Shown here: one piece after another, positions 23,236 to 45,860 of the stretch
Layout: each line of letters begins with the position of its first letter
Position numbering within the stretch: the stretch's first letter is position 1
DNA from: Sminthopsis crassicaudata
Taxonomy: Eukaryota
Reading direction: 5' to 3'
Length of the DNA stretch: 64,000 nucleotides
NCBI RefSeq assembly: GCF_048593235.1
Contig: NC_133620.1
Span: forward strand, 396,581,261 to 396,645,260
Notes under the pieces: generated by a model
Told to the model about the DNA's origin: nothing
The model's input: the letters and a program-made list of their open reading frames with translations, nothing else
Database searches by the model: none
Made by a program: the position numbers and the translations under genes

Positions 23236-25988
23236 CAAGCACATGGTCTAATTGTTGTCATTGTTAAAACACTAGAAACTAGGAGATTGGGGATTTCTCC
23301 TGCAGAGAGAATACTTGGGATATACATGTTATCTATCGTCAAACACTTGAAGGGTTTTCATATGAAAGACATATTGGTCTTGTTCTTCTAGGCAAAGGGG
23401 AGAACAAGGGTAAAACTGTAAAGACCGATCTTGGGTAGAATCAAAAGGAAAACTTCCTAACCTAATTAGAACTCTCCTAATGTAGTGGAAAGTTGTGCTA
23501 CAATGTAATACAGGTCTTTAAGCAGAGGTTTTAAATTCACTTCTCTGGAATGTTGGGGAGAGAATTGTTGTTCAAAGTATAGTTTGGACTAAATGACCTC
23601 TGACAACCTTTCAAACTGATATTCTGTGATTCACCGGGGAAGACACCAAGATAAATATGGCACAGCCCTAGCTCTAGGGGAAATTCCAACTCCCTCATCC
23701 AAGTTTTTCCTCTGAAGCCAAATAGAATAAAGAGAATTCCTTTTTCACGTGACAATCTAGGAGAGAGTATAGGACTTAGAGGAAATAAGACCTGAATCTG
23801 AATCCTACCTCGGACAGTTACTAATGGCTGACCCTAGGCAAGTCTATTCCTCAATTTCTTCATCAATAAAGTAGAAGGGGTTAGGGATGGAGTCAGTGGA
23901 TGCTAAGGTCCGTTTGAGCTCTAAATCAATGATGCTGTAATTTGAAGAATGCTTTCTCAACCCCCTTCAATTTCATCAGATCCAAGAGACTATGACAAAA
24001 ACAATGTTATTATCTAATTGGCAACATTTTCCCTTTAGTTCTTGATGTAGATGATTCAAAATTGACATAATGAAAGGAATGGAGGTTATTTTAAAAAGGA
24101 AATCCTTAAGAATCAAAATCCAATTGAATACTACTATTCTGAGTGTTGAAGTCTCACAGAAATTTATCACTATGTAGGGAATGTAAAAGATCCAAAAAGA
24201 GGAGGCCTATGGTTTTATGTTAATTAGGAATTCTTATTAATTTAAAATATTTATACCAAAACTCCTTTGCCAACACTGAAGTTGCAACAATATATCATCT
24301 TTGGCCATAGAGGAAAGAAAATTAATTTTAAAAATATTCTTGCAGCCTTGGTAAGCAAGTTTTCTAATCTTTGATGAGCCCAATCACAAGCATGTAACAA
24401 AGATCTCATCTGTGGGTCTAACAATGTGGATGATTCATTCTTAAAAGGGAGAATTTAGTCTTCACTTCTCAAAAAGTAGTGCCCTCGTGTCCTCTGATAA
24501 CTAATGTCTAGATATGATAATTGTCCTGAGGCTTCAATGAACCCTGAGAAAGTACTAGAAGAACTGGAAGAAAGGGACACAAACTGGCACCTCAATTGAC
24601 AAAGCCCTTGTTACTTTTATACATTATTTTTTCTTTAGAACAATAACTCTTAAGCTGGAGCTCATGAACTTAAAATTTTTGACAATCCTATGTTTTTTAT
24701 TTTGTCCATTTATAAACATGATTCTGAGAAGGGATAGACAGAAAAGGGGTCCCAGGACAGATACACAAAAAAGATTAAGAATTTGTTTTAGAAGATAGAA
24801 GAAATAACAAGACAAGCTGCCATACTTTACCAGATTTTCATCAATAGCTAAGATAGAACAGTGGGGGGAAAGTGACTACTTCATTTTAGAACTCAAGAGA
24901 CATCTAGCTTGCACCCTAGATTTTGCACAAAACCTTTTTTCCCCCATAAGTACAGGTATGTAACTGTTTGTCCAATAGCAGTGAACAGAGACCCACAGAC
25001 CTGGGGGAAATATGAGGTTATAAGTTAAAGAAATCAATCTATAAACAATAAAGGTTTTGTTGGGGGACAAGTACTGGACCTGTTATTTAAATGATATAAG
25101 GAGCTCCCAGTCTACTAATTCAGGTAATACCACCTCTGTAGCATTTAGGCTTAGAAAGATGTCAAGATCAAGGCCTGTAAGAATTCTTTCCCAGAAGGAC
25201 CAGATTAAAATGTAACTGGGAAATGTTTAACAAAATAAACATAAAATATAATGTTGGTGATGTTAAGTTGTGGTTTTCTAAGTCAGTATGCAACTCATTG
25301 GGATCTCCTTCTAAGTTTGACATCACTGGTCTAGACACACAGCCGTGTGGTTTTATATGTGCCAGTAACAGGACTTGTACCCCCATTTTCCTGTCCCTGT
25401 GGCCAGAGGTCTATCCACTACAATATATACTGTCAAAGATTTTAATCACAATTTAAAATATTATCCATAGTATTCTCTCTCTGTCTCTGTTTGTCTTTCT
25501 GTCTGTCTGTCTCTCTGTGTCTGTCTCTGTCTCTCCGCCTCTGTCTGTCTCTGTCTTTCTGTCTTTCTCTCTCTTTCTCTTTCTGTAAGTGTTGTTTTTA
25601 CCAGATGTATCATTCCTTTGACATTACTCTGCATGGGGAAAGGTCTGAGAAAATCTAGTGGGCTGGTATATTTAACAAGGCTACTTTGCTAGAAAAAGAT
25701 GAAACTAATTTTTTTTTCACTTTCAAATATCAAAATCATAATTTCTTAGTTGTCATGAAGGACAACAGTGTTTTTTAGGTAAAAATAATATTCCAAACAA
25801 ACTTATCTTTCTACCAGAAAAAATGAATGGGGATTCATACAAAATATTTTTAAAACAATCTATATTACTAAATCTAAATGAAAATTAAGAAATAAGTAGT
25901 ATTTGGGCTCTTTTTTCATCACTTAGTTTTCCCTGAATTTTTTTCTAAGGTTCTGATGAGAATGTACTGATTTAAATGTTTCCTTTAC

Positions 25989-26670
25989 AAATACTGAGGA
26001 GGGGAAAGGGATCTGTATGTGCCAAAATGTTTGTGGCAGCTCTTTTTGTTGTAGCTAGAAACTGGAAGATGAATGGATGTCCATCAATTGGAGAATGGTT
26101 GGGTAAATTGTGGTATATGAAGGTTATGGAATATTATTGCTCTGTAAGAAATGATCAGCAGGAAGATTACAGAGAGGCTTGGAGAGACTTACATCAACTG
26201 ATGCTGAGTGAAATGAATAGATCCAGAAGATCACTGTACACTTCAACAATGATACTGTATGATGATGTATTCTGATGGAAGTGGATATCTTCAACATAAA
26301 GAAGATCCAACCCACTTCCAGTTGATCAATGATGGACAGAAACAGCTACACCCAGAGAAGGAACACTGGGAAGTGAATGTAAATTGTTAGCTCTACTGTC
26401 TATCTATCCAGGTTACTTATACCTTTGGAATCTAATACTTAGTGTGCAACAAGAAAATGGTATTTACACACATATATTGTATCTAGGTTATATTGTAACA
26501 CATGTAAAATGTATGGGATTGCCTGTCATCAAGGGGAGGGAGTAGAGGGAGGGAAGGGATAATTTGGAAAAATGAATACAAGGGATAATGTTAAAAAAAT
26601 TACTCATGCATATATACTGTCAAAAATTATAAATAAATATCTTGATTTGGTTTAAGAAAAAAACAAAAAA
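25989..26670 (+). mobile_element. Young 5'-truncated L1 (ORF2 C-terminus + 3' UTR)
   Basis: ORF 25976..26275 has the L1 ORF2 end (CAKMFVAALFVVARNWK...). 16-bp TSD TAAATGTTTCCTTTAC at 25973-25988 / 26671-26686. A-tail at 26657-26670. Confidence 0.95.
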
Positions 26671-27659
26671 TAAATGTTTCCTTTACTGGTTTAAGCATGT
26701 TATTAGAGATTTTAAGCTGATTACCCAGCTTTTAATAAATCAGTCTATTTTTTTCTCTAACTCATCAAAATGGAGAAAATTGAGTATCAAGTTTCAATCT
26801 CATGTGTTCTGTAATTCTGTGTTCTGGTGCAATGCCCACACAACTGGTCTGATTTGAGTCAAAATAGTGATCTTTCCAAGTTTAATAAAATAAACACTTA
26901 CAGTTGAATAGAATTGGAAATGCAAATATTGAAATTCTTTTAAATGGCACATTTATTGCATTTTAAAGATCCCAATGACACAGAGGATTAGAGAAGAGGG
27001 TTTTTTGAACTATATATCAGAGAGCAGTATGAAGTGGACAATGGATTTCTTGATATAGGGAACTTCTACTCAAGCAGGTCATCCCTTAATCTTAGAATTC
27101 TTTAGAATAGCTAAATGATAGCTATACATCAGTGGAAGACTTGAATCCAGTTTTTGATGGTGTCAAGGCATTCAACAAATAATGAAATAAGGAGAATGAT
27201 TTTTTTGAGAGACAATGAGAGGAAAGACTAATTCCTACAATGATGTTCTCTATTTTTGTCACTATGGTTAACAACATAGATAATGATGTGGAATTATACC
27301 AGCAATAATGTTAAAATAATTCATATTTATGTTGTACAGATTATAAAGTACCTTCCTCCAAGCAACTTTGCTACAGTAGTGTTGAATCTTCTTCTTCTTC
27401 TTCTTTTTTTTTTTTTTAAAGAAGTATTAGAGGGATGATTTTGGAAATTAAAAGGCAGCTACCATAGAAAGGGGAGAGAGTCAGCATCAGAAACCTCAAG
27501 ATCAAGTTCAAGTCCTTTCTTTGTCTCTGATGCACACAGGACAAGTGACAACCTTTTTAAGTGTAGGTGGCTTCTATACTTCCATTATTCTAAGTCTCAC
27601 TCTAGGGCCAGTCAAGTTTTTATACCTATCTTATAATCCACTAAATGAGAGCTTTATAG

Positions 27660-28500
27660 CATTACAAGCTTGCAGAATTGGAAGAGAACTTGGAGGTGCC
27701 TAAACTAACCAATGAAAAAAATCCCATCTACAAAATGTCTTATCTACAGTCATTCTACCTGGGTGGGAACAACACCCCCAGTTGTGGGGAAATCATGGCT
27801 TTATGAAGAGCCCATTTCAATAGTGTGCATCTCTAATGGTTAGGTAAGCAAAAGTTCTTTCATATATTGAGTCAAATTTACTCCTTTTAATTGGCTCACA
27901 TTGACCCTAGTTCTTTTCCCTGAAATGACACAGAGCAAGTGTGCTCTTCTTCCATTTGAAGATCCTTCTGATTCCCATGGGTATTTGCTGTATGATATAG
28001 AAACTTCTCTTTCCCAGTTACTTATATTACTGTGTCTTTCAGAACTTTCCCTTTGAAAAGTTATCTTCCCTTAGTTTTCCCAAGAATTTCCAGTTCTATC
28101 ATTCTTTATTTCATAAGAAATGTCGATTCCTTACTATGCCAGTAAACTGCTTCTGGTAATGCTCTGATTTGTTAGTGAATCACTTAAAATATAGTCCTCA
28201 GAATTAAACATCGCTCCATGTGGGATGAAACCAGTGCAAAGTATAATGGGACTTTTGCTTCCTATAATTAGGACACTATATTTCCTCTTAATATAGCCTA
28301 AGATTTCCTTAGTTTTTTTTAGCAGCTTTATCTTACTATTGGTTTTCATATTGAGCTTATGGTCAACTGGAAGGCTCAGTGTTTCTTTTATTATTTTTTA
28401 AATAGGAACTGTTGCCAATTATTCATGCAATTCATTTTAAAAACTTAAATGCCAAACTTTACATTTATCTCCATTAAATTTCATCTTATTGATTTTAACC
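27660..28500 (-). mobile_element. Degraded L3/CR1 LINE
   Basis: ORF 28134..28349 reads KKTKEILGYIKRK, matching the CR1 RT C-terminal KKANAILGCIKRS motif. Confidence 0.65.
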
Positions 28501-28951
28501 CGGTATAATCAATTTTATGAATCATAGGATCACAGCTTAGAGATTTGGTCCAATGCTTTTATTTTATAAGTGAAGACGAGTCTAAAAAGATTGTGGCTTG
28601 TCACACAGTCAATTAGTTACAAAGTATTAGTAAAAGTAATTGCATCAGCTTCTATTTATACTATATTTTTACATACATTATCTGATTTGATCCTTACAAC
28701 AATGCTGGTATTCCATTTTAATAATAGCTTTTTATTTTTCAAAATACATGCAAAAATAGTTTTCAACATTCATCCCTGCAAAACCTTGTGTTTCACATTT
28801 TTCTCCCTCCCTTCTGCTCCCCTCCCCTAGACAGCAAATAATCCAATACAGATTAAACATGTGCAGTTCTTTTTCCTTCTCCCTACTCTCCCAATGAATG
28901 CATTTGTTTATTCTGTTATAAGCTACAAGAGTTCTTTCTAGTCCTCCTACT

Positions 28952-29563
28952 TCATTCGTCAGCTGGTTCTTTTTGGGAAATCTTGTTTTTTTCTGCCTCA
29001 GCCATGACCTGTCTGTGGAATTCCTTGAGAACCTTTACCTGCCGAGGTCGGATTTGGATGTGAGAACGGATGTCAGCAATAGCTTTCACGGCCTCCTCCG
29101 GACTCCAGTTATACACCTGTATCAAATAGGCCGCCACCATGGTGGCGCTTCTGGAGCGCCCAGCCTTGCAGTGAACATAGACACATTTCCCCAGTGCCAT
29201 GTATTTGAGTGTGAACTGGACACCTTTCTTTAGGTTTTCCAAAGTTGGGACTCCAGTCATATCCACTGTGCTGAGACGCAGTTGTTCTACTCCAACTGCT
29301 TTCCATTCCTCAGAAGTGTTACACAAGAACCTCGTCTCATATTCTTCATTCATGGTGATCACTGCTCGGACATTCTCCTTCTCTACTAGCCGGAGCGTGA
29401 GACTGCGCAGCGGCAGCGCGCCCAACAGCACGGTAGAGTCGATGCGGTGGTACCAGTCGCGGTGCCCGGCTCTTGACACCTTATCGAGCACCAGCGTGTA
29501 CAGAAGTGTCGGATAGAAGAGAATCCGAGCCAGGCCGGCACCCAGCACAGATGAGGCCGCCAT
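28952..29563 (-). CDS. PTPMT1: Intronless PTPMT1 (mitochondrial phosphatidylglycerophosphatase / dual-specificity phosphatase) retrocopy with intact 203-aa ORF
   Basis: Continuous ORF with LARILFYPTLLYT N-terminus, WYHRID, NEEYE, VDMTG and the catalytic loop HCKAGRSRS (Cys132 at 29168-29170). About 148/190 identical to the human protein as recalled from memory. Strong Kozak context (GGC ATG G). No introns. Confidence 0.95.
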   Translation of the reverse strand: MAASSVLGAGLARILFYPTLLYTLVLDKVSRAGHRDWYHRIDSTVLLGALPLRSLTLRLVEKENVRAVITMNEEYETRFLCNTSEEWKAVGVEQLRLSTVDMTGVPTLENLKKGVQFTLKYMALGKCVYVHCKAGRSRSATMVAAYLIQVYNWSPEEAVKAIADIRSHIQIRPRQVKVLKEFHRQVMAEAEKNKISQKEPADE

Positions 29564-29654
29564 GCCGGTGCGGGCCCAGAGCCACCAGTTCAGCTTTCAG
29601 GCCTAACCTTGGATCTGGGTTCAGGCTCCCCGGCTGGAGTTCCTGGCTCCGGCT

Positions 29655-29800
29655 CCGGCACCAGTATAGTCTACAAAGACACCTTATACGCCCTGCTCCT
29701 CCCTAAGCCCAGAGCTTCCTGATGACCTGATTGGGTCACAGACTAGGGGGCTGTGAGCTCTTGGTAGCTAAGCCTCTGAAGGGGCTGGAGGGCGGTGCTG
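29655..29800 (-). promoter_or_regulatory. Candidate core promoter inside the retrocopied leader
   Basis: TATAA(GG) at 29684-29688, ACCCAATCAG (NF-Y-like CCAAT) at 29730-29734, GGGCGG GC box at 29790-29795. Order and spacing fit a minus-strand TSS near 29658. Confidence 0.5.
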
Positions 29801-30019
29801 GAGGGGAGCGAGGGGGTGGTCACTGCGGAGCCATGTGCAATTCTTCTAAACATATTTCCACATTTATCAGCTATCATTCCATTTTGCCATCGAAGAAACT
29901 GAGGCACAAAGAGATTAAAGTAAGTCCGGAGTAATACAGAATAAATGTCTGAAACAAGATCTCAATTCCAATCGGAGGATTCTACCCCTTCTGTACCTTT
30001 TTTCCTTTTTTAAGTTAAA

Positions 30020-30089
30020 ACAAGTTTTTTTTTTTCCTTCCAATTAACAATCATTTATTTTCTTCCCCGCATTCCCTCTTCTCCATGAG

Positions 30090-30168
<79 letters not shown>

Positions 30169-31440
30169 TCGTAATAAATCCTCATACTCAAGGAAAATAA
30201 ATTTCTTTATTGCCCATGTCCAAAAATGTTTGTATCATTCTGCAACATGAGCCCATCACTTCTTTGTCAGGAGGTGTGGTTGCTGCTTCATTACCTGTCT
30301 TTTGGAATCATACTTGGTCACTGGGCAACATTCTTATGTATACAATTTTTGAAGACTATGTTCCTTGGAGATGATAGATGTCATCATCTTCCCCAAGTAA
30401 TGAGTCAGGGTTTAAATGTGCTTTGCATATATACAAATTGGGCCTTTATTTTATCTTTGACATATTTACAACTTTCCATTTATTCTTATAGTTCATCTTC
30501 TAGACACAACCTTTTTGCAGTGCTTTCATATTCTTCATCGGTTATATGCAGTTCCTTCCATTTTTAAATGTTTTTGAAAACTTATAAAGAATGAGAATGG
30601 GATAAAGAGGGAAAACACATACCTATTTGAGAGGCCATAAAAGCCTTCTAAATTCAGATAGAGAAAAGAAGGCAGGAATAAAGGGTGGAGGGAAAGGATA
30701 AGGAAGAGATCTTTGGAGAGGGAGGCAAGCTAGAGAATAAAGCAGAGGAGTCAGGAGAGATACAAACACAAAATAAAAACCAGGAGTAAAAAAAAAAGTA
30801 GGGGTAGTAATCATGATCTCATAAAGTTAAAACTAAAATAGATTTAATCAAAAGAAAAACTATACTACATGTCAGCCATATTAATCAATCTTATTTTAGA
30901 CTAAAGTAACTAGACAGGATAAGGTTGGAATATTGCTGTGGTGTATGAAATGATGAGTTGGTGAAGTTAGAAAAATACAGGAAGACTGGGACTTATGAAG
31001 GAAAATGTTATCAACCTTCAGAGAAACAAAACAAACAAGCATAGTATACATAGATACTTATATAAATGTATATGTATGGTTATAGATCTCTAGGTATATA
31101 TGTATGTTAGTGTATATTTCCACATATGTATATGCATGTTTATATAGGTATGTATTTACACACATTCATAAACATATGTTAGTGGGTAATTACAGCCTTC
31201 TTGGGGAAGGAGGAAAGGAAGAAAGAAAAAAGAATCAAGTAAAAAGTGCACAGAAGAGAACAAAAGAAAATTTACAAGGAAGCAAAGATGGACAGCTCTG
31301 AACAAAATGTGTATTTATTATACAGGCTTTCTTGAAATGGAAATTTATTGCTTTGTATTCTGAATCCTCTTTTATGTTCTGCTGTGCACATGGTAATTTT
31401 TTCCTTTTCCTAGTTTGTATTTAAGTTTTAAATAATTTTT
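30020..31440. mobile_element. Old marsupial L1-type fragments (minus about 30020-30570, plus about 30600-31440) with (GA)n at 30085-30162
   Basis: 3'-UTR-like segments typical of old marsupial L1s. Boundaries approximate. Confidence 0.5.
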
Positions 31441-32989
31441 TAAAAAGCTTATCAAAGAGTTTCCTGTGTAGCCACACGGGTTTCTTCAGATCTCTCTTTA
31501 GGACTTTTTGGAGCTTTTGGGAAGTGAGATCAAGGCTTTTTTTTTTTTTTTTTTGGCCTTTCCTTTGACTTTTACAAATATTGATTTTGCATAAATTATG
31601 ACAAATAAAACTTCTGGTCATAATTACAAGAATTTAAAAATTTGTATTGATGCCAATCATAGAAATAAGGTAGCTCAGAGAGAGGTCTTGATGCTTGCTT
31701 GTAGTTACTAAGAGTTTTGAGTGAAGGAAATTATTACCTCTAGGACTCCTTTCTCTAAGCCTACAATGAATGTGTCTAAAGTAGTATACATAATCATATA
31801 TATTAATACAATGTTAAGTGTCTTGAACCTGAAGATGATTTTCAAATGAAATTTTTAAAAGGATTCTTTTGTTTTAATCATTATTCTACAGAAAGGTTAG
31901 GTTTGTTTATCCTAAGTAACATTCAACTGTTTCCTATTTACTGTTATTTTGTGGTTACTAGAAGAGGTATTCTGTACTGCCTATATAACCTTCAAAATAA
32001 TCAACTCTTGCAAAACTGATTGCATTTCAAGAGTGGCTGAAGGAATCCCATGCATAATTTATATCTCTTTATGCTTATAAAGTGCCTTGCATTGAGGCCA
32101 CTTAGAAAGGTGTCAAATACATCTAAATAATTATCCTTAACTTTACTTCATTTTTCTCTTGTTCCATTAGGGTTGCTAATCATGTCAGTATATGTAAAAG
32201 GGGGATTCTTTAGTGTGGGGAGGGGTATTGAGAGGGATAGAGATAGAGAGAAGGGAATAAAGCTTCAATAGGGACAGGTTTGACCTAGATTCCCAGCTGC
32301 CCATTCTTTGAATATCACAACTCAATTAAATATGGAGGGGGAAGGGAATTTAACTTCCAGAAACATTACATTAATTCATCCCACTATTCTCATCCTCTTC
32401 CTTTCCCAGACAAAATCACCTAAGTCCAAGTTGGTTGTGGACAGGCCACCTTCACATGCACATGTGCTGAGCTTCAAGCATGTATGCCTTTATTCTTCCT
32501 CTAGAAGAAGCTAATTTATTCTGCCACACGCTTCAGAAATGCTTAACCTTGTTATTTGATAGCCATGTGTTTCAGAGCTGAGGTAGGAGGAGCTGTTTAA
32601 ACTCCTTTTTTTGCTGAGAGAGAGATGGAATGTTAGAACTAAAAGGTTCTGTGACAGTTGGGGATGACAGTTGTGGAAAGACTCAGCTAACTGGAGGCAA
32701 AAGTGCCCAGGCCAGGGAGTTCTCAGAGCTGCCTCAGAACAGCATCCAAAACTGTAATTGGGCCAATACAGATTGCCATCGCCATTCCCCAACCCCCACT
32801 TTCTTTATTTTTCCCCCATCAGTAAAATGAGGGGGTTGGATTAGGTTTCCAGAGTCCCTTCCCTTCCAACTTTCAATTTAAGATCCTATCATTTGAGGGA
32901 AATTGATGAGCAGCAGAGCATTTTTAAAGGAACAAACAGTTCTGGAATATTGTAAATCTTGTCTTTCTGAGGTTTCTTTCGTTGTTGGC

Positions 32990-33220
32990 TGGTACAGTGA
33001 TAGAATGTTGGGCCTGATTCAGGAAGACTCATCTGAGTTCAAATCCAGTCTCAGACACTTAGCAACTGTGTGACGTTACATAAGTCACTTTTTCTCAGTT
33101 TTCTCATGTGTAAAATGAAGTGGAGAAGGACATGGTAAATTACGCTAGGGTCTTTGCCAAGAAAATCCCAAATGGACTCACAAAGAGTCAGACACAATTG
33201 AAATGACTGAATAGTAATGA
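32990..33220 (+). mobile_element. Mar1-type marsupial SINE (further minus-strand copies near 9750-9910, 15930-16160, 60705-60930)
   Basis: CORE domain followed by TTTGCCAAGAAAATCCCAAATGGACTCACAAAGAGTCAGACAC tail. Confidence 0.75.
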
Positions 33221-33959
33221 AATCTTTGTGTTTCCGAGTTTTTTTTAAACATCACATTTCCTATTTTGGAATCTGTACCTCATATTTGAAAGTTTAGAAC
33301 TGGAAGAGATAAGTACATAATCCAACCTGCTAGTTTATCAAAGAGGAATCTGGTACTCTTCGGGAGGCTCTGTGATTTGTCCAAAGTCAGACAGGTAGTC
33401 TATATCAGAAGCCAGGTTCTCTGTATCTAAAGTCATAGTCTTTCTGCTACAACACCAATATTGAGGTGTTAGTGTAAAAAGGAGATTCTTTCAGCTAAAG
33501 TTTCAAACTATTAGCAGTATTTATCCACTGTGTGAATAGAATGACCTTGCTCAATTCTATGGGAATTGTGGTATAGAAGTGTGACCCTCATCTTGGTGCT
33601 CTAGAATGCTACACCAACAAACACAGAACATAAACTTGGATGGGTCCTTTAAAGCTGGAAAGGTTTCAAGTATATATGATCAAATGCTTTTCCTTCTCAC
33701 AGTATAGACTAGTTAAGAGCAATTCATGCTAACCAAAGGTGAAAAGGAATTGTGGCCTATATCAGTAGAGAAATAATCCACAGTACTGAAAATCCTATAT
33801 CCTTTATGTAAATATAAGTGGCAACACTATGAGAGGTAAAAGCAAAGAAAAATAGAGGACATAGAGAGTCTTCATGCTAAAGATGCAAAATCCAAATATG
33901 CCCGAGATGAGAATAATATTTACATAAACAATAGCTAAACATTTTCCTTTTTAAATACT

Positions 33960-34470
33960 ATTTTTATTTTACCTAGTAGTATGTAAAAAAGACAAGGGTT
34001 TTTTTGGGGGGGTTATACATGTACATTGATTTTTTACATATTTGCATATAGATTGTGTTGGGAGAGAAAAATCAGAATAGGGAAAAATCACAAGAAAAAA
34101 AATGAAGAAAAAAAAGTGAAAGTAATATGTGTTAATCTACATTGTCTTCATAGTTCTCTCTCTGGATACACAAATTGTGTTTCCCATCCAAAGATTATTG
34201 GGATTACCCTGAATCACTGAACCATTGAGAAGAACCAAATCTATCATAAGTTATCATCCCCCAACCTTGCTATTGCGTGTACAATGTTTTCCTCATTCTT
34301 CTTGCTACACTCAACATCAGTTCATGTAAATCTTTCCAGGCTTTTTAAAAATCAGCCTGTTCATCATTTTTTAGAATGATAATAACCTATTATTCATATA
34401 CCATATCATTCAGCCATTCTCCAATTGATGGGCATCCACTCACTTTCCAATTCTTTGCCAACACGACAGC
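33960..34470 (-). mobile_element. Older L1 3' fragment
   Basis: CATTCAGCCATTCTCCAATTGATGGGCATCC and reverse 3' UTR. Confidence 0.75.
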
Positions 34471-35485
34471 TAAACATTTTCAAGCAGTATAAAGCAAATT
34501 GGAGCAATCAGAACTGGTTTGGGAAGGGGGAAGAAAAGAAATTAGGGAAGATTCTGTAAATGAGGTGATTATTGAGCTGACTTTTGAAAGTATGGGACAT
34601 AGATTGGTGATAACATCCTAGAGGAATTAGTATCACAGATTCACATCTGAACACTGAGAAAAGGGAATAAGAAATCTGCTTGATAACGCTAGATAGACAA
34701 GCTTGGTTGAAAACAAGAGAACCCAAATCATTGTAATAATAACAAAAACTATAATGATGATAATGAGAATATAGTCACTTATACAGTAATTTAAGGTTTC
34801 CAAAGTGCTTTATATACATTATCTCATGAGATCTTCACAGCAGCTTTGAAATCAGTGTTCTTGTTATCTTGATTTTACAGATGAGAAAATAGTCTGAGAA
34901 AGGTTAAATGAGTTATTGCCCAAGGTCACCCCATGGTACAGATGAGTATGGTTATAGTTATCCAGGAGAATTGTTAATTGTTCATAATTGTCTGAAGTGG
35001 CACCTGATCCCAGTCTTCCTTACTCCAAATTCTAAACTCTATTGTGCCATCTAGTTTGTCTAAGAGGGAGTGGAGATTTAATAAGATGACCAGGTTGTCT
35101 CCATCACACATGGCCTGTCCCATTTCCTTCACTACTTGTTAACACTGTTCCACTGAACTACTCTTCTGAAATTACTTGTATTTAATGTATGTGTATACTT
35201 ACACATACATATATATCTATATATAGTATCTTCTTTTGTACATATTGTTTTTCTCCAGAAGAATGCAAACATGTTGAGAGCAAGAACTGTTTTTTACTGT
35301 CTATCCCCAGTTCATAACACAATGTCTGGCACATAAAGTTTTTGTTGAATGAAATGGAATTTGAAGTAGATTGGAGAAGGGAGAGAGGGAGGATGGTAAG
35401 GAGCTGTAAAAATCAGGATGAAGAATTAAGATTTGAAAAAACATTGTAGGCACTTTTTTCTTAAAAAAAAAAAAAAAAAAGCTAT

Positions 35486-35628
35486 GGGGCAGCTATGTGG
35501 TACAATGGATAGAGCACTAGCCCTGAAGTGAAGAGAACCTGAGTTCAAATCTGGTCTCATACACTTAGCACTTCCTAGTTGTGTGACCCTGGACAAGTCA
35601 CTTAACCCCAATTGCCTCAGGGGAAAAA
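35486..35628 (+). mobile_element. WSINE1-type CORE-SINE
   Basis: GGGGCAGCTATGTGG head, GAGTTCAAATC, CTTAACCCCAATTGCCTC tail. Approximate TSD AAAAAGCTAT / AAAAAGTTAT. Confidence 0.9.
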
Positions 35629-36964
35629 GTTATTTATAGTTCATCTTTGAACAATATTGTGGTTACCATATACAACATTGTCTTGGTTCTGCAAGTTTCA
35701 TTCTGCATTATTTCATACATCTTTCAATGTTTTTCTAAGACTAACTATACCTCATCATTTCTCACAGCACATTAGTATTCCATCAATAACAGGCTCTTGA
35801 AAATGGTGAATCTATTCAAGTGGAAACAGGAGAATGAAATCAGTGTGAAAGTGTAGGGTTGAAAATTCTGATTGAACAGTCATCCATGACTTCTAAACCA
35901 TGCCATCATAAGGAGAGAAAAGTGGAAAGACCATAACATTTGGAATTGGAGAATATGAATCCAATTTCCTACCTGTGTGACTCTGGGCATTCATTTGGAC
36001 CTCTTTGTGCTTCTGTTTTCCCATGTGTGAAATGAGGTTGTTTTTGAAGATCCTTTCTAACTCCTATGACCCAATGACAGTGAAAGATAAATTGGACATA
36101 ATCTGACTTCACAATCTGATCCTTCTGGGTTGGCTTCACATAATTTCCCTTCATGCACTCTTTGTTTCAGTTAAAACGACCTACTCATTTCCCAGAGCTG
36201 GCAATCCAATTTCCACTTCCATATCTTTAGCACAGGCTGTCTTCCACTCCAGGAATGCCCATGCAGTGTCAAATAATCATGCATATGTTTTACTGCTTCT
36301 GTATTGTCGAATTTAAGTAGAACTTAAAAGCTCCTTGGGCTCGGGGACCATTTTTCGTTTTGTCTTTGGATCACTACTTCCTATAATTCAGTGCTTCAGA
36401 CATAATGAAACTTTCTTATTGAATTGGTGAAGAAATCTTAAAAGATTCCTGTAAAATAAAAAACCCAAGGATAGAGTTTTTAAAAAGAAAATTGGAAAGT
36501 GTCAAATAAATGTAAAGGAGAGATGCAAAAAGAAACACATCAGTAGTAAACATTTACCAGACAGGCAGCACAACACAGCAGATAGTGAGCTGGAAGTTGG
36601 AAGACCTGTGTGATGTGTCCTGGAGGCTAATGGAATAGTTCTTTAGATTCTGATAGCCCCAAGCCTCGCTCTAAAATGAGGAATTACAAAGGAGATGCTA
36701 ATCTTTAATGATAGGAGTTCCTCACATTGAGGAAACCATAGGTCTGAACTAAGCAAAAAAATTTCCAATATTACATACCTATTTTAACATTTTTTTCCAA
36801 AATAAGTTAGATGTCACGTGGGTAAAGGATCAAATATCTATAATTATCCAATTGGAATCAAACTCTTATCTAGATTATTCTCTTATTATTATGGCTATAT
36901 TTTTGTCATAAACAATACAACTAATAAACATGGGGATTCTAACTTCATAAATAAGAATGCAATT

Positions 36965-44447: not shown

Positions 44448-45860
44448 CAGTGGTTCATTACTTTTTGGGGGAGAGGAGACATGAATACTTTTGGAAGTCT
44501 GGTGTAACCTACAGACCTCTTCTCAGAATAATGTTTTTAAATACATGAAATAAAATTCAAAGGATTTTAAAGGAAATCAAAGAAATGAAAGCACAGCTAT
44601 AAACTTTTTTTTTAATTCATTTTTCCAAATTATCCCCTCCCTCCCTCCACTCCCTCCCCCCGATGGCAGGTAATCCCATACATTTTACATGTGTTACAAT
44701 ATAACCTAGATACAATATATGTGTGTAAATACCATTTTCTTGTTGCACATTAATTATTAGCTTCCAAAGGTATAAGTAACCTGGGTAGATAGACAGTAGT
44801 GCTAACAATTTACATTCACTTCCCAGTGTTCCTTCTCTGGGTGTAGTTATTTCTGTCCATCATTGATCAACTGGAAGTGAGTTGGATCTTCTTTATATTG
44901 AAGATTTCCACTTCCATCAGAATACATCCTCATACAGTATTGTTGTTGAAGTGTACAGTGATCTTCTGGTTCTGCTCATTTCACTCAGCAACAGTTGATG
45001 TAAGTCTCTCCAAGCCTCTCTGTATTCCTCCTGCTGGTCATTTCTTACAGAGCAATAATATTCCATAACCTTCATGTACCACAATTTACCCAACCATTCT
45101 CCAATTGATGGACATCCATTCAATTTCCAGTTTCTAGCTACAACAAAAAGAGCTGCCACAAACATTTTGGCACATACAGGTCCCTTTCCGCTCTTTAGTA
45201 TTTCTTTGGGATATAATCCCAATAACAGCAATGCTGGGTCAAAGGGTATGCACAGTTTGATAACTTTGTGGGCATAATTCCAGATTACTCTCCAGAATGG
45301 CTGGATTCTTTCACAACTCCACCAACAATGTATCAGTGTCCCAGTTTTCCCACATCTCCTCCAACATTCATCATTATTTGTTCCTGTCATCTTAGCCAAT
45401 CTGACAGGTGTGTAGTGGTATCTCAGAGTTGTCTTAATTTGCATTTCTCTGATCAGTAGTGATTTGGAACACTTTTTCATATGAGTGGAAATAGTTTCAA
45501 TTTCATCATCTGAGAATTGTCTGTTCATATCCCTTGACCATTTATCAATTGGAGAATGGTTTGGTTTCCTATAAATCAGGGTCAGTTCTCTATATATTTT
45601 GGAAATGAGACCTTTGTCAGAACCTTTCCTTTTAAAAATATTTTCCCAATTTGTTACTTCCCTTCTAATCTTGTTTGCATCAGTATTGTTTGTACAGAAA
45701 CTTTTTAGTTTGATGTAATCAAAATCTTCTATTTTGTGATCAATAATGATCTCTAGTTCTCCTCTGGTCATAAATTCCTTCCTCCTCCACAGGTCTGAGA
45801 GGTAGACTATTCTCGCACAGCTATAAAATTAAAAAAAAGTTTATAGATTAAAAACCTCCA
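44448..45860. mobile_element. hAT-Charlie (Charlie4-like) non-autonomous element interrupted by the L1
   Basis: Begins CAGTGGTTC. Internal CTTCTCAGAATAATGTTTTTAAAT. 8-bp TSD TTCTAGAG / TTCTAAAG. Confidence 0.65.
44605..45814 (-). mobile_element. Young 5'-truncated L1 with 284 uninterrupted ORF2 codons
   Basis: ORF 44917..45771 includes the C-terminal CWRRCGKTGTLIHCWWSC zinc-knuckle region. 13-bp TSD GCACAGCTATAAA at 44591-44603 / 45815-45827. T-tract at 44605-44613. Confidence 0.97.

Follow-up and report, generated by a model that had tools for sequence, protein, structure and literature searches.

An intronless PTPMT1 copy under purifying selection in addition to its intact parent gene in dasyurid marsupials

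Introduction

PTPMT1 is normally a single-copy gene and is essential for cardiolipin synthesis. The window analysed here, a 64,000-nucleotide stretch of DNA from the dunnart Sminthopsis crassicaudata, contains an intronless version of this gene, and the question raised by the locus is whether such a copy is the relic of a retroposed mRNA, a gene that took over from its parent, or a gene retained next to it. The original prediction, made from the letters of the window, proposed an old yet undamaged candidate for a marsupial second copy, in keeping with purifying selection and possibly a tissue-specific paralogue or a replacement for the parent. We have followed this up by comparing the locus with its parent, with the corresponding loci of other dasyurids and with known PTPMT1 structures, and by tests of selection on the coding sequence.

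Results

Anatomy of the retrocopy

The retrocopy, including its target-site duplications, occupies positions 28858-29845 on the minus strand and is a complete processed copy of a PTPMT1 mRNA. The insert proper (28872-29831, minus strand) is flanked by direct repeats of 14 nt on each side. The 3'-side duplication (28858-28871) reads CATGTGCAGTTCTT on the plus strand, the 5'-side duplication (29832-29845) reads CATGTGCAATTCTT on the same strand, and the two match at 13 of 14 positions, with one mismatch. Both sit exactly where homology to the parental mRNA ends. We estimate at ~1e-6 per position pair the chance that two given boundaries would carry a direct repeat matching at 13/14, and the presence of the same junctions in three genomes, described below, rules chance out.

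Between these repeats, all on the minus strand, a 5' leader (29564-29831), homologous to what precedes the MAAS start codon in the parent, is followed by the intronless coding sequence (28952-29563), identified by its open reading frame, by Pfam and structure comparisons and by the selection tests. It comprises 612 nt, with an ATG start, 203 codons and a stop codon, and there are no internal stops or frameshifts across the 203 codons. The 3' UTR (28893-28951) carries an AATAAA at 28907-28912 which, together with its surroundings, is identical in the three species compared. Fourteen nucleotides after this signal begins a purine-rich remnant of the poly(A) tail, GGGAGAGTAGGGAGAAGGAAA (28872-28892), with parental 3' UTR homology stopping at ~28891. 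The GC content is 0.51-0.60 within the insert versus 0.28-0.40 around it. An mRNA origin is evident from the absence of introns where the parent has them, the target-site duplications, the poly(A) signal and the tail remnant. The reading frame, the HCKAGRSRS loop, the 14-bp duplication with one mismatch, the AATAAA and the tail remnant named in the original prediction are thus all present, on the minus strand.

The parental gene

The parent PTPMT1 of S. crassicaudata was found in the same assembly (GCA_048593235.1) on CM109186.1, so the intron-containing gene for which the original prediction had proposed a search exists. It has four exons separated by three GT-AG introns of 968, 1944 and 917 nt. 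The retrocopy is on CM109184.1, where the locus is 100% identical to the window. It aligns in one piece to all four parental exons, across all three exon junctions and without the introns, and its 5' end coincides with the first annotated base of the parent gene. Within the coding sequence the two genes differ at 47 nucleotides, an identity of ~92%. The parent lies tail to tail with a BTB-Kelch (KBTBD4-like) gene, an arrangement that recurs in every other marsupial looked up. The positions of parent and copy, one on a record of 258 Mb and the other on one of 479 Mb, do not in our reading indicate an out-of-X origin.

In dunnart, devil and antechinus alike, the parent gene is intact, spliced and constrained, which excludes its replacement. 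Dasyurids carry two PTPMT1 genes, and the retrocopy is the second copy, not a substitute as the original prediction had allowed.

Nearly all marsupial PTPMT1 protein models retrieved have an N-terminal extension of ~100 residues (MPPVPAPS...), encoded at 70% GC. Its dN/dS is ~0.8-1.8, except for a single pair that reaches 6.05 at a dS of 0.013. This extension is probably 5' UTR or CpG island mis-annotated as coding, the real protein starting from MAAS. Annotations of the parent treat the stretch homologous to the retrocopy's 5' leader as this coding extension; in the retrocopy its reading frame is not open.

Protein fold and catalytic residues

The protein encoded by the retrocopy matches the Pfam DSPc family (E 7.7e-19) and, over residues 37-193, the crystal chains of mouse PTPMT1 (3rgo/3rgq, E 6e-83). 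It is 81% identical to mouse PTPMT1 over the catalytic domain, with an identical HCKAGRSRS sequence. An AlphaFold model built on an alignment has a mean pLDDT of 70, with low confidence for N-terminal residues 1-36, and superposes on 3rgq/3rgo with a TM-score of 0.94 and an rmsd of 1.5-1.6 Å. The DSPc match and the structural superposition both identify a dual-specificity phosphatase fold.

The catalytic features of PTPMT1 were taken from a published list (PMC3576122). Both the Cys-X5-Arg loop with its basic residues (HCKAGRSRS, residues 131-139, at 29147-29173 on the minus strand) and the general-acid aspartate of the WPD-like loop (Asp101, 29261-29263, minus strand) are intact. Asp101, Cys132 and Arg138 are unchanged, as they are in all 119 other PTPMT1 sequences compared. 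Like known PTPMT1, the copy also keeps a hydrophobic N-terminal segment: the core LARILFYPTLLYT is conserved, with R26L, G31R and P32A derived, in a region (residues 1-36) where the model is of low confidence. By fold and catalytic motifs, the retrocopy encodes a member of the PTPMT1 family. It differs from the parent in being intronless, on another chromosome and restricted to one lineage, and its protein differs from those of the dasyurid parents at 18-22 amino acids.

Orthologues and age of the insertion

The protein cluster at 90% identity groups the dunnart protein with Antechinus flavipes XP_051852525.1, which is named 'PTPMT1-like', and with Sarcophilus KAM9003078.1 (UniRef A0A7N4UZG4), three members in all. 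Over ~20 kb, the loci of Antechinus and Sarcophilus harrisii align collinearly with the window at 85-94% identity, and the target-site duplications, the 5' and 3' junctions and the AATAAA are the same in these syntenic copies. One ancestral insertion was inherited by dunnart, antechinus and devil. Since the junctions are identical and syntenic in three species, the insertion is older than crown Dasyuridae. A comparison of the orthologous site across marsupials had been proposed; within dasyurids, which are the group covered, it returned intact copies with identical junctions in both Antechinus and Sarcophilus. Neither of these two genomes has another called gene within 10 kb of the retrogene.

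In a protein tree of 20 sequences, the retrocopies form a clade with a support of 100, sister to the three dasyurid parents (94), with a joint node at 93. Bilby, diprotodonts and Dromiciops fall outside the node uniting retrocopies and dasyurid parents, and a nucleotide tree agrees. The Dasyurinae-Sminthopsinae split has been dated to 20.6-29.3 Ma, depending on the analysis, and the Peramelemorphia-Dasyuromorphia split to 47.6-64.4 Ma (Kealy and Beck 2017, PMC5715987). Combined with these dates, the protein-tree placement puts the insertion between the two splits, on the dasyuromorph stem, after the divergence of bandicoots and bilbies and before that of Sminthopsinae and Dasyurinae. The retrocopy is therefore old, as had been predicted, its insertion predating crown Dasyuridae (20.6-29.3 Ma). 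The further description as a marsupial second copy is right for Dasyuridae, in three species, and wrong for marsupials generally, given the tree.

The chromosome records of dunnart (CM109184.1) and devil (CM109177.1) have near-equal lengths, 478.68 and 479.45 Mb, and the gene is at 396.61 Mb in the former and 396.72 Mb in the latter, though the sequences differ by ~7%. One of the two assemblies may have been scaffolded on the other.

Selection on the coding sequence

The codon set comprised seven coding sequences, from three retrocopies and four parents, with Dromiciops as the single DNA outgroup. All seven are 612 nt long, without indels. Pairs of retrocopy orthologues differ at 14-16 nucleotides and 3-4 amino acids, giving a dN of 0.0065-0.0087, a dS of 0.080-0.095 and a dN/dS of 0.07-0.10; among the dasyurid parents dN/dS is 0.11-0.19. 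The coding identity among the three retrocopy orthologues is 97.4-97.7%, with no indels in 612 nt. The adjacent flank (~1 kb per side) is 91.6-93.9% identical and has 8-15 indel events per kb, and the distal flank at 30901-32900, which contains a conserved non-coding block, is 95.5-96.0% identical. The dS of the retrocopy orthologues equals the flank divergence, so the region mutates normally.

In a branch model (our own GY-type codon model with F3x4 frequencies on a fixed tree), omega was 0.10 for the retrocopy crown, 0.17 for the retrocopy stem and 0.30 for the background. An omega of 1 was rejected for the crown (2 delta lnL 25.8, p 3.7e-7) and for the stem (2 delta lnL 16.4, p 5e-5). We also simulated neutral evolution with flank-derived substitution and indel rates; the simulation started from the crown ancestor and ignored the stem, and is therefore conservative. 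A fraction of ~0.07 escaped nonsense mutations and start loss in all three lineages, ~3e-4 escaped frameshifts, and ~2e-5 escaped both.

The reading frame is thus intact in the orthologues of several species with a dN/dS significantly below 1, as is expected of a functional retrogene. The retrocopy is a gene under protein-level purifying selection. The selection that had been suspected from the sequence is borne out by an omega of ~0.10, by the rejection of neutrality and by three intact orthologues, and the proposed dN/dS comparison gives 0.07-0.10 among orthologues. The properties by which a young processed pseudogene was to be recognised, namely near-identity to the parent, a dN/dS of ~1 and disabled orthologues, are all absent.

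Derived residues near the N-terminus

With changes polarised by Dromiciops, 27 substitutions fall on the retrocopy stem (19 synonymous and 8 non-synonymous) and 15 on the parental stem. Three radical changes, R26L, G31R and R57L, are fixed in all three retrocopy orthologues at positions that rarely vary elsewhere. Residue 26 is arginine in 116 of the 117 other amniote PTPMT1 sequences having a residue there, residue 31 is glycine in 114 of 119, and residue 57 is arginine in 98 of 119. The first 37 residues of mouse PTPMT1 carry the mitochondrial targeting signal (PMC3576122), and residues 26 and 31 fall inside the segment matching that region. Changes of this kind could reflect a shift in targeting or function, as opposed to mere redundancy, and R26L and G31R may leave room for changed import or anchoring.

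The CpG island and the leader

The first 200 nt of the coding sequence (29364-29563, minus strand) form the core of a CpG island derived from parental exon 1. This segment has 19-21 CpGs and an observed/expected ratio of 0.99-1.06 in all three species, and the ratio in the flanks is 0-0.3. A silent transition was possible at 20 CpG positions, and 1 of these changed on the whole crown tree, versus 17 other silent changes, which indicates that CpG hypermutability is switched off here. Promoter CpG islands are unmethylated in the germ line, and by this inference 29364-29563 would be too. As this stretch stems from exon 1 of the parent, part of the parental island came along with the retrocopy.

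The leader is the fastest-evolving part of the insert, at 83% identity between dunnart and the other two species, with indels. Its CpG observed/expected ratio is 0.34 in dunnart, 0.46 in devil and 0.65 in antechinus versus 0.92 for parental exon 1. We considered the leader as a conserved promoter and rejected it: no part is less conserved, and the CCAAT- and TATA-like motifs of dunnart are missing in the other two species.

Signals in sequencing runs

Sequencing runs of the window species were searched for 31-mer words. Three runs (X1-X3), whose type was guessed as RNA, have 650-850 million letters each and contain 0.65-0.70 of the sampled 31-mers of 28700-30000; their shares for the upstream flank at 29860-31160 are 0.05, <0.05 and 0.12. 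In this query, 73% of the words are inside the insert and only 4.8% are common to the parental gene or mRNA. With 650-850 million letters and a single-copy locus of 1 kb, coverage this full is, in our estimation, unlikely to arise by chance. For runs of guessed type, the word shares, which are indirect evidence of transcription, fit a discrete transcript over nearly the whole insert.

Five other runs contain the upstream flank (29860-31160) at shares of 0.60 (X11), 0.50 (X4), 0.42 (X31), 0.36 (X32) and 0.31 (X10), in each case at least their share for the retrocopy. The word shares may thus owe something to a transcript that overlaps or neighbours the retrocopy, or to libraries that are not RNA, and the pattern suggests that 29860-31160, adjoining the retrogene, has a transcript of its own or is an enriched regulatory region. 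Within this interval, the three species are 92-94% identical over the block 30171-30370. Runs from a second organism, some labelled RNA-Seq, contain 0.13-0.47 of the words of 28700-30000, which exceeds the maximum of 5% that any dasyurid parental mRNA could contribute.

The neighbourhood of the retrogene

A block of ~0.8-1 kb at 31955-32950 (and also 31374-31473) is 95-100% identical in the three dasyurids, a conservation exceeding that of the retrogene coding sequence. It has no notable open reading frame, and an Rfam search over 24000-36000 returned no match. The block is probably a conserved non-coding element that lies within the gene desert, at 2-3 kb from the retrogene on its upstream side. 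The other long open reading frames within the 64-kb window have no Pfam match. The longest of them, at 44917-45771 on the minus strand (284 aa), we take by its motif to be the cysteine-rich C-terminal end of L1 ORF2.

Discussion

We consider it very probable that this locus is a functional retrogene, retroposed on the dasyuromorph stem and kept as a protein-coding gene in addition to an intact parent. L1-mediated retroposition would have copied a full-length PTPMT1 mRNA, with all four exons, a leader of ~270 nt and the full 3' UTR; the insertion would have taken place in the dasyuromorph stem lineage, and the copy would since have been maintained alongside its parent. Since the Cys-X5-Arg loop, the general-acid aspartate and a hydrophobic N-terminal segment, putatively for targeting or anchoring, are kept, the product most likely still acts in the cardiolipin pathway as a mitochondrial phosphatidylglycerophosphate (PGP) phosphatase. 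The retrogene probably relies for its expression on the small CpG island that came with parental exon 1, around the start codon. For the retrogene, we only infer that the enzyme is active and located in mitochondria, where the promoter lies and in which tissues it would be used.

Other explanations have to be weighed against this one. The anatomy of a retrocopy, the lack of introns and the AT-rich, gene-poor surroundings are what a processed pseudogene would have, and its reading frame might have survived by chance in a slowly mutating region. This explanation is refuted, and we give it practically no credence: a dS of 0.08-0.095 that equals the flank divergence points to a normally mutating region, the omega of 0.10 departs from neutrality at p 3.7e-7, and joint neutral survival is ~2e-5 with three independent lineages intact. 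Repeated gene conversion from the parent, or an artefact of assembly or cDNA contamination, are generic alternatives for any intact retrocopy, and nothing specific speaks for them here. They too are refuted and have a negligible probability. The retrocopies are monophyletic (support 100) with 27 fixed stem changes common to three species, they are 47-58 nt from every dasyurid parent, and parent and copy are on different chromosomes; three assemblies have the same junctions with diverged flanks, and the species' DNA runs contain the flank.

A further possibility is that the retrogene is a neofunctionalised paralogue, in which N-terminal and surface substitutions have changed its submitochondrial topology or location, its partners or its substrate. 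R26L, G31R and R57L, fixed in three orthologues at otherwise conserved positions and two of them within the first 37 residues, argue for such a change, as does a retrocopy stem branch 2.8 times as long as the parental stem over the same interval. However, the stem omega of 0.17 in the branch model gives no sign of positive selection, the N-terminal net charge is kept because the arginine lost at 26 is regained at 31, and the catalytic residues and fold are unchanged, so we regard neofunctionalisation as unlikely. A functional retrogene of conserved activity is our preferred reading.

How does this gene compare with known retrogenes? Carelli et al. 2016 (PMC4772013) reported 88-280 preserved retrogenes per mammal species, of which ~3% inherit the parental promoter. 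The dunnart gene resembles theirs in being mono-exonic and mRNA-derived with target-site duplications, in having orthologues under purifying selection and in its association with a CpG island. It differs in that the island is parental exon-1 sequence within the insert rather than a recruited external one, with a promoter role that is putative. The retrogene is real yet fairly ordinary; a hundred or more such preserved genes are to be expected in any mammalian genome. Annotations of all three genomes already list it as PTPMT1-like, and a literature search found no publication on a PTPMT1 retrogene or retrocopy, nor on dunnart or devil retrocopies of PTPMT1.

A closer comparison is the 'PTPMT1-like' gene of the shrew Sorex araneus, which is also intronless, with a gene of 663 nt encoding 220 aa. 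The catalytic loop is retained by all three shrew copies (Sorex araneus, S. fumeus and Suncus etruscus), which also have in common a derived C-terminal extension. In contrast to the dunnart copy, to which they are 65-67% identical, they keep Arg26 and come from an independent eutherian event. Mole and bat genomes also carry annotated PTPMT1 '-like' copies. It is conceivable, though we think it improbable, that the dasyurid gene is no redundant spare and instead a specialised second PGP phosphatase, with import, membrane topology or regulation altered through the N-terminal changes R26L and G31R, and that PTPMT1 retrocopies have been retained recurrently in small insectivorous mammals of very high metabolic rate. 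If this were true, the retention of copies in dasyurids and shrews, and perhaps of the '-like' genes in mole and bat, would be a sign that selection has acted convergently on the supply of cardiolipin.

For dasyurids, the locus is a clean case of a retrogene that brought with it a piece of the parental CpG island and stayed CpG-rich in an AT-rich gene desert. Studies of PTPMT1 in dunnart, devil and antechinus, be they by RNA-seq, by knock-out or on cancer metabolism, must separate two loci whose coding sequences are ~92% identical. Kept for more than 20 million years and more tightly constrained than its parent, the second copy would give dasyurids two PGP phosphatases, and offers a natural experiment on dosage or sub-functionalisation in a lipid enzyme of mitochondria.
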